Positions 7,870 to 13,977 of a DNA stretch of 64,000 nt are shown here, in pieces. The translations under genes and the position numbers were made by a program. Source of the stretch: Adineta vaga (lineage: Eukaryota > Animalia > Rotifera). The stretch spans positions 2,914,001 through 2,978,000 of the forward strand of contig CP075496.1 of the NCBI GenBank assembly GCA_021613535.1, written 5' to 3'. Under the pieces are notes generated by a model that saw nothing but the letters and a program-made list of their open reading frames with translations, had not been told where the DNA came from and made no database searches. Numbering within the stretch: the first letter of the stretch is position 1; every line of letters starts with the position of its first letter.

Positions 7870-8085
7870 AACGAGTAATAGAAGTGTAATCGTTCGCTTT
7901 TTTTCTTTTATACAAATGTAAAAAAAATTCATTCACACAAAGATAAAATTTTCCATTGGTCGACAATTTTCACCAATTAAATTCATTTGTTTTTTTTATG
8001 AATATTTCTCTGACATCTGGATCATTTGTTTCTAAGTGTACAAATCAACAACATTGTAAGATATAGATAACTTTCAGATAGAATC

Positions 8086-9362
8086 ATGTCACCTCCATCC
8101 ACAAAAATGATCGATGATGGATCGAATTCGAATGAAAATAATGTATCAACGGATAAAAATCCACAAATATCAATATCACCATTGAATAAAATTGAAAAAG
8201 TTGTTATTCATCCATTAGTACTATTAAGTGTTGTTGATCATTTCAATCGTATGGGTAAAGTTGGTAATTCTCAACGTGTCGTTGGGCTTTTACTTGGTTC
8301 ACTTAAAAATAAGATTCTTGATGTTTCAAATAGTTTTGCTTGTAAGATATTTGTTTCTTTTTTTGTTTATCATATAAATATTATTCTTTGTTTAGTACCG
8401 TTTGATGAAGAAGAAAAAGAAAAAGAAGTTTGGTTTCTTGATCATGAATATTTAGAAATTATGTATACCATGTTTAGAAAAGTTAATGGTAATTATATTT
8501 GATAAATAAAACGAAGTTTAGTTTTATTTTGTTTTATTTTAAGCTCGTGAACGTATTGTTGGATGGTATCATACAGGTCCGAAATTACATCGAAATGATA
8601 TTTCAATCAATGAATTAATTCGAGAATATCATCCCGATTCAGTTTTAGTTATTATTGATGCAAAACCAAAAGATCTAGGTCTACCTACTGAAGCTTATGT
8701 TGCTGTAGAAGAAATTCATGATGTAAAAGAATATATCTAGGATTTTGCTCGATTAAATTCATTTTGATTTTTCTATTTTATAAAGGATGGAACACCAGCT
8801 TCGAAAACATTCGAACATTTACCATCAGAAATTGGTGCAGAAGAAGCAGAAGAAGTTGGAGTTGAACATCTTCTTCGGTAGATAAAATTCTTCTCTTCTA
8901 TTTCAAAATTCAAAATCATACAAAAATCTTTCTTTTAGTGATATTCGTAATGCAACAGTTGGTACACTTTCTCAACGTATAACGAATCAATTAATGGGTC
9001 TCAAAGGTTTAACAAAAAGTTTATATGATATTCGTGCCTATTTAGATAAACTCTTAGCAAATAAATTACCATTAAATCATCAAATTCTATCGCATATTCA
9101 GGATATGTTCAATCTTTTACCTGATATAACTCATCAAGATTTAACTAAATCAATCTATGTGAAAACAAACGATGAAATGTTACTTGTTTATCTTTCATCA
9201 TTAATTCGTTCGATCATTGCATTACATAATTTAATTATGAATAAAATTCAAAATTCTGATGCTGAAAAAGGTGAAAGTATAAATTCGAATACGGCAGTGA
9301 TTGAAAAGAAAACGGAAAAAGGAAGTGGTGATAAATCATCAACAACTAACAATTCGAATTAA
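8086..9362 (+). CDS. PSMD7: 26S proteasome lid subunit Rpn8 (MPN domain), 5 exons
   Basis: [70 protein letters not shown]. Confidence 0.97.
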
Positions 9363-9560
9363 AAAAGCAAACAAAACAAAAACATTTATATTCTGTTATT
9401 TCTTTTTTTTAATGTTTACTGCTTTGTCTTTTCTCTCTTTTCTTTTATTTCAATAAATTCCAACTCGAGAAAGAGTCAAAAAGAATCAACAAGTGCAAAA
9501 TTAATCAAGCATGACCAAAAGAAAAAGTATACATTTATATTTTAGAAAGAATAATTCGAT

Positions 9561-11001
9561 ATGCAACTACGTATTCTCACATTAAATATTTGGGGTGTTC
9601 ATTATGTCGCAAAATTTATTAATCAACGTATACAAGCATTAATTGAACATTTGACAAATCCTGATGTTAATTATGATATTATTGGATTACAAGAAGTATG
9701 TTGATGAAATTTCTTGATTTTGACTCTATTATTTTTGTTTTTATCATAGGTTTGGAGTAAAAGTGATTATAAATATTTATGTGATCAATTGAAAAGTGTT
9801 TATCCACATAGTTATTATTTTTTAAGTGGTTTAATCGGTTCTGGTTGTTGTATGTTTTCCAAACATCCAATTATTGGAGTTTATGAACATCGATATACAT
9901 TAAATGGTATATACAAATACATTTAAGATAGATTTTTCAATGTTTTATTCATGTATTATATAGGTTTTCCACATAAAATTCAACACGGTGATTGGTTTTG
10001 TGGAAAATTAATTGGTTTATGTAAAATTCTTGTTAATGGATATGTAATTAATGTCTATAATACACATTTACATGCAAATTATCATCATGTTATACCGAAA
10101 GATATCTATTTAGGACATCGAATATGTCAAGCATATGAATTAATTCAATTTATCGAAAGTACATCATCAGCTGATACAACAGATTTAGCAATTCTTCTTG
10201 GAGATTTAAATTTAAATAATGATGATTTAGGTTTTAAACTTATTCGTGGTATTCTTCAATTCAATGATTCATTTCTTCAACGTATTAATAAAGTAAATAG
10301 AAGAACGAAAAAAAAACTATTACAAAATAAATTCGATTTCTTTCTTTTTCAGGATATTTTCGATCCAACTGTTGGAAATAGTGGTAAAACATGTGATTTA
10401 CTTGATAATCCATATGTTATTCCACATCCATATCAAGGTGAAGGCGAACGAATTGATTATATACTTTATCAAACACAAAATAGTTTGTTTTTCATATTGA
10501 TTAATAATCTTTATTGTTATTTTAAATTGTTTAGATAATGTAAAATGTATTGAAGCATATCCGACGTTACATAAAGTTCCAAATCATTCCACTAATCTTC
10601 ATTATTCTGATCATTTAGCTGTTTATGCTTTACTTGAAATTGAAAAGAAAAATTCCAATCAAAAAATGATATTTGATAAAAATTCTCAATCAATGGATGA
10701 AGAAACAAGAAATAATCTTCGTTCAGCTTGTATAATCGTTGAAGAATCAATTCAACGTATTCAACGTCATCGATTATTTTGTCTTTTAATTGTAATCTTT
10801 TTAACTTTCATCATATTCTCATTTAATGGTAATCCATTATCAAATGGATATGTTTTTACGATTTTAATTATTCTTAAGAATCTCTTTTCTCTTCTTGGTC
10901 TTGCTGTTTGCATTTGGTTCATCGGTTTAGGTAAACCTGTTGAACGAAATGCATTAATTTCGATACAAAATGCTATGTATCTACGTTTAAATAATTCTTA
11001 A
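9561..11001 (+). CDS. SMPD2: Neutral sphingomyelinase (EEP/DNase I-like fold with two C-terminal TM helices)
   Basis: LRILTLNIWG, DIIGLQEVW, GSGCCMFSKHPI, NGFPHKIQHGDWFCGK, NTHLHA, GDLN, RIDYILY, SDH and a hydrophobic C-terminal hairpin. Confidence 0.93.
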
Positions 11002-11050
11002 ATTCTCATCAATAAATCTCATTCAGAAAATCAAAATATTTTAGTTTTAG

Positions 11051-13977
11051 ATGGAAGTATCTCGACAATTATATTTTATTATATTTGGTGTTCTATTTAC
11101 TGTATTAATTGATTTATATACAAGTTCATCGAGTTATGCGTTGATTTTCTTAACATTGATTCGTCTAATGGCGATATGTATAGCATTTTTTTATCGAATT
11201 ATTTATGATAATTATGATAGAAATGTCAAATTCGATACGAAAAAAACATTTTGGAATCCATTTAAAAATCTTTTTGTGGTCATTGCAGCTGTTCAACAAG
11301 CATTTGTTATATATTATATAAATTTTTCATTAGATCTTTGGACGATATTATATATTATTGAACAAGTATCTTTGCCACTTTTTGCATATCTATGGATTCG
11401 ACGAATTGAAAGAGAAGATCTTAGTTTTTTACAATATGCTTGGTTAGAAATATTTGATTCGAAAACAAATCAAGGTTTGTAGATTGTTTTTCTCGACTGA
11501 ATAGATATTTTTCTCAAGAAACAAATTCAATTACTAATCAGATTTTTATGTTTTACAGCTTAATTCTAATAAGAACTAACAATGTAAGTGTTAATAGATT
11601 CATTTGCATGTGCATGTTGACTAGAACGAACGAAATTTATAACTTAAATAGAATTCAGATGGAAAGACTACGATATTTTGTTGTTATTTTCTAGGTTCTT
11701 CATCAAAACGTCAAGATGAACTGTTTGTTCTCAAACGTCTCTTTCAATATAGTTTACAAGATTGGAAAATAGTTACTACAGGAACAATGTTTTTACTAGC
11801 AGCTGCTCTATGCAAGTATTAATTCATATTTATCGATGAAATAAAATATTTCTTAATTTTTCATTTTCAGCGGAAGTATTTGTACCATTATATACTGGCC
11901 GACTTTTATCAAGTGTAGCTTTTCAAGAAGCATGGTTACAATTTAGATATAATTTAATTATGTTTGTTGTTGTAAATTTTGCTGGGTATGGAGAGATTAG
12001 ATTATTGAAGAAAATGTGATAATTGTTGTGTTTTTAGAGGATTTCTAGGAGGATTTCGTATGGGTGTATTTTCTGTATGTGTATCACGACTTAGTATACG
12101 CATAAAAACAAAATTATTTGAATCATATTTACGACAAGAAATCGGCTTTTTTGATACGAATGAAAGTGGAAAATTACTTTCACGTCTTAATCATGATACT
12201 CAAGTAATGAGTTCAACTGTTGCCAATAATATTGCACAATGTATTGGTGCATTAGTTCGATTTCGTAAGAAGAAAAAAAATGAATTTAATATTGAAATAA
12301 TAAATATGTATTTATCTTTATCTAGTTGGTACTGTTGTAATGATGATTCGATTAAGTATTCATTTAACGATTGCATGTATTATTGGTGCACCATTGATCT
12401 TAGTTGTCGCGAAAATTTGTGGAAATATTCATCGACGTATATCAGAAAAAGTTCAAGATTTATCAGCTGAAGCATCGGAAATAGCCGATGAAACAATTCA
12501 AACAATTCGAACAGTGAGAAGTTTTGGTAATGAAAATGAAGAATTGAAAAGATTCGAAAAGACACTTCAACAATCTTATGATATTTCTGTTATACAAGCA
12601 GCTTTAACTGCAGCACAACGTTGGTTTGTAGATGTAAGTCGACTTCAAATTAATTTATATATCAGCACTAAAACAATCTGATTTTTTTCGTTTTGTTTTC
12701 TTAGTTAGCACAACTTTGTATGAGTATTATTATGCTTGCATATGGTGCCAAACTTGTACGTGATAATTACGTTACTGGACCTGATCTTTTAGCATTTATT
12801 ATCTATCAGTTAACACTAGGTGGAATTTTAAGTGTAAATAAGTCATAGATTTAAATACAAGATTTTCAATTTTGCTTTTTTTTTTCTCGATCGTAGGATA
12901 TTTCTCAAATTTATACATCATTAATGTCAGCAGCTGGTGCAAGTCAATCAGTTTTCGATTATTTAGATCGTCAGCCAATACAAAAACCAAGTGGAACATT
13001 GCAACCAGAGAATCTACAAGGTGACATTGAATTCGACAATGTTTCATTGGTTTATCCAGCACGATCGAATGAAATTGCTATTCAAGTAAAAGAATTTATT
13101 TTTGAAAAGTAAATCCAAGAAAATTCATTTGTTTTCAAATAGAATGTATCATTTAAAATCAAAGCTGGTCAAACATGTGCTTTCGTTGGACCCTCAGGAT
13201 CTGGTAAGAAAATCTTCTTATTTTTTAATCAATTAAAATAAAGTTTTGTTTCAACAAAATAGGAAAATCAACATGTATTAACTTAATAGAACGTTTCTAT
13301 GATCCAATCGAAGGGAAAATCTTAATCGATGGGAGAGAAATTCAAGAATATGATCATAAATATCTTCATAAAAAATTAGCAATGGTTGGTCAAGAACCTG
13401 TTCTATTCAATAGAACAATTCGAGAAAATATAAATTATGCCAACAACAACAATAATGATGATGATGACGATATCGAAGAGAAAATTATTCAAGCAGCACA
13501 AGATGCAAATGCTCATACATTCATTACGGAATTAACAAATAGTTATCACACTAAATGTGGACAACGTGGTGGACATTTATCAGGTGGCCAAAAACAACGT
13601 GTTTCTATTGCTCGTGCTGTTATTCGAAAACCGACTATACTTCTTCTCGATGAAGCCACATCTGCATTAGATCCTGTTAATGAACGATTGGTAAGCACTT
13701 TTTTTTTCTTCGTATGAATTTCTAAAGAAATAAACCGTAATGATTTCTTTCAAAATAGATTCAAGATGCATTATTTTATAATAAAGATAAACAAGTTCAA
13801 CGAACTGTTCTTATTTCAGCACATCGATTAAGTACAATCGAACGATGTGATCGAATATTTGTAATACATAAAGGTCATTTAATTGAACAAGGTACACATG
13901 ATGAATTAATGACAATTGAAAATGGAATCTATCGGGAACTGGTTCGACGACAAAGAATGAATCTCGATGATGATTAA
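11051..13977 (+). CDS. ABCB9: ABCB half-transporter, ABCB9/TAPL (HAF-4/HAF-9)-like, with N-terminal TMD0
   Basis: [25 protein letters not shown], Walker [49 protein letters not shown]; stop at 13975-13977. Confidence 0.88.

Follow-up and report, generated by a model that had tools for sequence, protein, structure and literature searches.

A candidate spliced-leader-resolved operon with a zero-spacer junction at the PSMD7-SMPD2-ABCB9 locus of the bdelloid rotifer Adineta vaga

The unrelated housekeeping genes PSMD7, SMPD2 and ABCB9 follow one another on the forward strand of the bdelloid rotifer Adineta vaga, in the 64,000-nt stretch C4:2914001-2978000 (hereafter the window, whose numbering we use) of a 100.8-Mb genome of six contigs and 30% GC, to which all genome-wide motif counts refer. 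Stop-to-ATG distances are 198 nt for PSMD7/SMPD2 (junction 1, with gap 1) and 49 nt for SMPD2/ABCB9 (junction 2, with gap 2). We consider it very likely that SMPD2 and ABCB9 form one unit resolved by spliced-leader (SL) trans-splicing; SL addition is what we infer at junction 2, where an SMPD2 message is polyadenylated exactly on the acceptor AG of ABCB9. That all three genes form an operon, with a single promoter and both junctions SL-resolved, is also probable, though we hold it less firmly. An initial annotation, made from the sequence alone, had described these tightly packed same-strand genes; all of its coordinates were right and the frames are intact.

The SMPD2/ABCB9 junction

The RNA data are assembled contigs of four studies or runs, whose RNA origin was guessed by a tool, yet which contain spliced joints. 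Such contigs lose short 5' pieces, so the presence of an SL in them is informative and its absence is not; likewise, a contig that spans two genes is no proof of a single transcript molecule.

Downstream of the SMPD2 stop, which ends at 11001, lie AATAAA (11011-11016), two tandem TTTTAG acceptors (11039-11044 and 11045-11050) and, directly abutting the second, the ABCB9 ATG at 11051. A contig of run X5 carries spliced SMPD2 from 10112 to 11051, followed by 20 A. Since 11051 is itself the A of the ABCB9 ATG, the tail starts immediately downstream of the acceptor AG (11050), and internal priming is excluded because the genomic sequence there is not A-rich (7 A in the 20 nt past 11050). The SMPD2 poly(A) site of this contig is thus the downstream acceptor AG, 34 nt past the hexamer. 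RNA is also continuous over gap 2: a contig of run X2 (10112-11477) has two SMPD2 introns spliced out and continues uninterrupted into ABCB9 exon 1.

The same layout is found in 12 loci, which share ancestry and hence are not independent. Gap 2 measures 26-87 nt, and TTTTAG or TTCTAG (TTYTAG) abuts the ATG in 12/12, a context that precedes 0.1% of all ATGs in the window. The initial annotation had pointed to both tandem acceptors; both are present, and only the second (11050) is conserved. A(A/T)TAAA occurs 11-34 nt upstream in eight of the loci and is missing from four; at these distances the usual cleavage window brackets or approaches the acceptor AG. The branch-point-like word CTCAT lies 18-53 nt upstream in nine of the 12 loci (0.8 expected from shuffles). 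The claim that the 49-nt gap holds no usable donor was also borne out: its only GT is 7 nt from the ATG, too close to serve. No conserved donor was found 40-130 nt upstream of the ABCB9 ATG across loci by a scan trained on a small set of 17 introns, and no RNA joint enters at 11051. As a diagnostic string, AATAAA..TTTTAGATG was rejected as weak, being only mildly enriched genome-wide (187 against 136 in the reversed control); the weight therefore rests on conservation and RNA.

According to the mechanism that we propose, the branch point and acceptor for ABCB9 would lie inside the SMPD2 3' untranslated region (UTR). The bond that follows the AG at 11050 would be the place both of SMPD2 polyadenylation and of SL joining; the SL would meet the ABCB9 start codon directly and make up the entire ABCB9 5' UTR. 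The earlier suggestion that 3'-end formation and trans-splicing nearly coincide here thus holds for the poly(A) site, which falls exactly on the acceptor in one run; SL addition itself was not observed.

Spliced-leader genes

That the host possesses an SL, as the annotation assumed, is clear from the genome. The rotifer SL exon (sequence given in PMC3795323) has 59 genomic matches within 2 mismatches, against 0 for the control; a GT donor follows the exon in all 13 copies read, and one copy folds with a z of -3.6. Within 2 mismatches of the known exon there were single-base variants only and no second SL class, a search that a divergent SL would escape. Rfam holds no family for the SL RNA or for the junction. 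Many of the SL RNA genes are head-to-head pairs about 131 nt apart (for example C1:2551160-2551336), each pair apparently sharing one short promoter, and a cluster lies at C5:9884356-9925969.

The promoter and the PSMD7/SMPD2 junction

PSMD7 is preceded by the divergent gene BAP18, and the gap between them contains a candidate bidirectional promoter. YGACATCT (at 8011-8018 in the window) and TTTGTTTCTA each occur once per locus in six loci of 3.0-8.4 kb, and only in this gap; TGACATCT has a variant form in A. ricciae. YGACATCT is probably a bdelloid promoter element, because CCAAT followed by YGACATCT is enriched about sevenfold genome-wide (353 against 51 in the control) and its reverse complement, AGATGTCR, lies about 33 nt upstream of most SL RNA gene copies read. 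The window has eight copies of YGACATCT and many genes have none, so its absence from the intercistronic gaps is only a proxy for a single promoter. Acceptor-like AGs at 8077 and 8081 precede the PSMD7 ATG. No RNA of the four runs covers 7825-8081, and a contig of run X6 starts at 8082, directly after the second of these acceptors, a suggestive fit with its use and nothing firmer. Transcription would start in the BAP18/PSMD7 promoter and yield one precursor through PSMD7, SMPD2 and ABCB9.

Could a non-coding leader exon within the BAP18/PSMD7 promoter, common to the genes, use the acceptors in cis instead, or could an uncut dicistronic RNA be translated? We regard such an arrangement, with no trans-splicing at all, as highly improbable. 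The conserved TTTGTTTCTA does contain a GT, GTTT donors are used at introns of the PSMD7-SMPD2-ABCB9 locus, and a leader joint could be missed in the uncovered promoter. However, long joints entering at 9546 or 11051 are missing from all runs, SMPD2 occurs as a message with a poly(A) tail of its own, and the genome contains dozens of SL RNA genes.

Junction 1 is built differently from junction 2, contrary to the initial annotation, which saw the same layout at both. A PSMD7 contig of run X11 ends at 9482, within an A run and with no tail shown, 20-25 nt past the hexamer at 9452-9457; the 3' end taken from this contig end leaves a spacer of 63-68 nt before the acceptor, as opposed to zero at SMPD2/ABCB9. 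PSMD7 would be cleaved and polyadenylated at that distance past AATAAA, and the downstream RNA would receive the 23-nt rotifer SL at 9545, 63-68 nt beyond the PSMD7 3' end. Across loci gap 1 measures 147-340 nt; the hexamer, some A-rich motifs and the acceptor are retained, as is a 4-bp hairpin just ahead of the probable cleavage site. The conserved motifs are A-rich, TATCGAATA-like and TAGTCAACC-like, with an E-box-like word in Adineta, and are not of the U-rich Ur type: no U-rich Ur element occurs about 50 nt upstream of the acceptor in 9478-9545, where the sole TAYYTT overlaps the acceptor itself. TCAASCRT plus acceptor was rejected as a general intercistronic element (10 genome-wide against 20 in the control).

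The hairpin before the PSMD7 poly(A) site has a variable loop (GAAA, GCGA, AAAA or GAGAAA) and an outer pair that is A-U, G-U or G-C across loci; two loci (L032 and L033) have a different, 5-bp hairpin in its place. It is conserved, but its covariation is not significant (116/500 shuffles). As a general element it was discarded, with no enrichment after AATAAA (2.6% against 3.0% at random); its pattern recurs only in the homoeologous locus described below and in one unrelated pair.

The strongest rival of the three-gene operon places a separate promoter for SMPD2 within gap 1. PSMD7 would then be monocistronic and SMPD2 would have its own short promoter and an outron, with SMPD2-ABCB9 alone forming an SL-resolved dicistron, or the whole would be a hybrid operon with an internal promoter. 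This division into two units seems unlikely to us. It draws on the stretch 9483-9545, where no RNA contig was found in any of the four runs, and on the size of gap 1 with its conserved motifs, which are not of the Ur type. Uncovered gaps are, however, also expected from fast processing; the BAP18/PSMD7 promoter motifs are missing from gap 1 in 6/6 loci, only 63-68 nt separate the PSMD7 3' end from the acceptor, and the rejected TCAASCRT string offers no genome-wide element. For the single promoter and for read-through of gap 1, the operon reading remains the one we infer. The annotation's proposal of a polycistron driven from the BAP18/PSMD7 promoter thus gains from motifs confined to that gap and from the contig that crosses gap 2, and does not gain from gap 1, which is unbridged.

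Conservation, the homoeolog and points against the operon

BAP18 is divergent from PSMD7-SMPD2-ABCB in A. ricciae, A. steineri, R. socialis, Rotaria sp. Silwood1 and two metagenome contigs, and named homologues come from Adineta, Rotaria and Didymodactylos. Gene order, one of the checks that the initial annotation had proposed, is therefore shared by four further named bdelloid species and by a homoeolog on C1 (C1:9.34 Mb; about 75% DNA identity). Spacing, another of them, is kept as the short gap 2 of the 12 loci and is lost in the homoeolog.

On C1, PSMD7-SMPD2-ABCB retains gap 1, with an acceptor that abuts the SMPD2 ATG, and BAP18 is absent. The ABCB copy there (L018:5000-5745) lacks the N-terminal hydrophobic exon and begins with a new 9-codon exon; it is a core-only transporter beside the full-length copy on C4. 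No significant match to a remnant of ABCB exon 1 was found in the C1 gap.

Several observations weigh against the operon. Gap 2 on C1 measures about 665 nt and contains three AATAAA, besides a TTTTAG that looks like an acceptor some 40 nt before the new ATG, and one Didymodactylos copy lacks SMPD2 between PSMD7 and the ABC gene. Because of these two cases, sequence comparison indicates that the tight junction 2 is conserved in one lineage of copies and is not obligatory. The poly(A) site at 11050 comes from one contig of one run, and in run X11 an SMPD2 contig stops at 11027, behind another CAG and with no tail. At 8078/8082, 9546 and 11051 the four runs showed no SL loose end; SL joined at the last two had been proposed as a check, which contigs of this kind cannot decide in the negative. 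The SL-ATG junction pattern had 0 matches in JGI metagenomes. Finally, PSMD7 and the gene beyond BAP18 are likewise preceded by a conserved unpaired acceptor, which thus marks trans-splicing, not a downstream position in an operon.

Further searches brought no SL to light. The compared gene loci have no SL tail, and no spliced transcript was recognised among them; exact look-ups recorded no transcript contigs for the exon-1 product, and the P0107 search returned a short ENA contig without SL.

Some of these points would also suit three independent genes in a compact genome, with an ABCB9 promoter in the last exon of SMPD2, an ABCB9 5' end (outron or UTR) overlapping the SMPD2 3' UTR, and overlapping transcripts merged in the assembly graph as the X2 contig. 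Gap 2 is bridged in only one of the three runs with coverage there, trans-spliced monocistronic genes likewise have an unpaired acceptor, and the homoeologous gap is relaxed. Against this, every species would need to have the promoter within coding sequence, gap 2 is at most 87 nt in 12 loci, and a poly(A) site on the acceptor AG, 34 nt from its hexamer where PSMD7 has 20-25 nt, is not predicted. We therefore find three independent genes very unlikely, and SMPD2-ABCB9 as an SL-resolved unit remains the preferred reading.

Genes of the locus

Features are collected in Table 1. Spliced gene models were joined for frame checks alone and homology searches were run per exon. The PSMD7, SMPD2 and ABCB frames have no internal stops and most of their introns are joints in RNA contigs, which confirm those of the ABCB9-like gene as far as 13262. 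SMPD2 exon 3 matches SMPD2 of PDB 8j2f (E 2.8e-26). The top PDB match of one exon of the ABC gene is ABCB9 (E 3e-15), which supports the name "ABCB9-like", given from homology and not from a phylogenetic tree.

Table 1. Features of the BAP18-PSMD7-SMPD2-ABCB9 locus (window coordinates)
Feature	Position	Strand	Description
BAP18/BACC1	7489-7869	-	Single exon, 126 aa, divergent from PSMD7; PF27797 BACC1_N match here and in A. ricciae orthologue; RNA contigs
Candidate bidirectional promoter	7870-8085	.	ATTGG 7955-7959, CCAAT 7973-7977, TGACATCT 8011-8018, TTTGTTTCTA 8025-8034; motifs kept in orthologous gaps
PSMD7/Rpn8	8086-9362	+	5 exons, 347 aa; Pfam JAB and MitMem_reg; frame check; RNA joints
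PSMD7 3' end	9452-9482	+	Poly(A) signal 9452-9457, 4-bp hairpin 9463-9476, probable cleavage site 9477-9482
A-rich spacer	9483-9545	+	63-68 nt, ends in unpaired acceptor TTTTAG 9540-9545; acceptor kept in orthologues
SMPD2 (neutral sphingomyelinase 1)	9561-11001	+	5 exons, 405 aa; frame check; all four introns in RNA
SMPD2 3' UTR including ABCB9 acceptor	11002-11050	+	AATAAA 11011-11016, candidate branch point CTCAT 11018-11022, acceptor 11045-11050, poly(A) after 11050
ABCB9/TAPL-like half transporter	11051-13977	+	10 exons, 738 aa, N-terminal hydrophobic exon; Pfam ABC_membrane and ABC_tran; frame check

ABCB intron 1 (11475-11694), which is retained in some RNA contigs, contains a stop-containing microexon and then tandem TGCATG, both in 12/12 bdelloid loci, with one or both TGCATG copies varied in three of the 12. 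Beyond BAP18 lies an unannotated minus-strand gene (ATG 7050; window 7050-7488) with an acceptor one base upstream of its ATG that is conserved in five species; the gap is 218-2308 nt. It is possible that this gene forms a second operon arm off the BAP18/PSMD7 promoter. The annotation of Didymodactylos (L027:1-8621) merges PSMD7 with the ABC gene in an 826-aa model that spans a stop codon and some 2.6 kb; this is probably an artefact, and an instance of how the locus affects annotation.

Comparison with known operons

The initial annotation had compared the locus with nematode operons resolved by SL trans-splicing. Junction 1 appears to resemble those of the SL2 type in having a poly(A) site, a spacer within 50-200 nt and an acceptor, whereas its spacer is A-rich and lacks TAYYTT about 50 nt upstream, and the spacer at junction 2 is 0 nt (PMC7668243). 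For the tight junction, the zero-spacer operons of Ciona or of the SL1 type are a better model. SL1-type operons of Caenorhabditis elegans have hardly any sequence between their cistrons, or none, and a canonical AATAAA upstream, and are resolved by the general SL (as described in PMC1488885); they make up a minority there, in a genome that possesses a dedicated SL2, whereas here no second SL class was found within 2 mismatches of the known exon.

In Ciona intestinalis, operons without intercistronic DNA have the upstream poly(A) site on the acceptor AG of the downstream gene, as at junction 2, and the branch point within the upstream mRNA; unresolved dicistronic cDNAs exist there, and one SL serves all genes (PMC1488885). 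The two differ in that AATAAA/ATTAAA within 40 nt is missing in 16/18 Ciona cases and present in 8/12 loci here, in the spacer of the rotifer junction 1, and in SL addition, which is demonstrated in Ciona and deduced here. Chaetognaths, gnathiferan relatives, also have unrelated housekeeping genes less than 250 bp apart, and no operon-specific SL; their operons were defined genome-wide from SL reads (PMC12460157). Operons were not reported in rotifers (PMC7986045), and we found no primary report since in the searchable literature, outside which most subscription papers lie.

With the Ciona geometry, either the upstream 3' end is a product of trans-splicing, with a branched RNA left over, or one molecule can yield only one of the two messages; how the 3' end forms, and whether convergence or ancestry explains such operons, were left open (PMC1488885). 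At our locus the SMPD2 3' end may be made by trans-splicing, using the conserved 3' UTR branch point, instead of by cleavage through the cleavage and polyadenylation specificity factor, with ordinary cleavage and a spacer at junction 1. We offer this as a tentative and rather doubtful idea. The long, variable or missing hexamer spacing at junction 2 would fit an end defined by the splice site, without proving it. If true, each precursor would give either message, or would need debranching.

Zero-spacer operons as the main type were previously known only in Ciona (PMC1488885). What the present locus adds is a conserved zero-spacer junction that falls on the start codon, a unit combining two types of junction, and a homoeolog that has diverged. 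A conserved bdelloid locus with both junction types and such a homoeolog would be a convenient test case for the Ciona questions and, if the 3' end of SMPD2 is indeed made by trans-splicing, the C1 copy with its relaxed gap 2 would supply an internal control for the matter left unsettled there.

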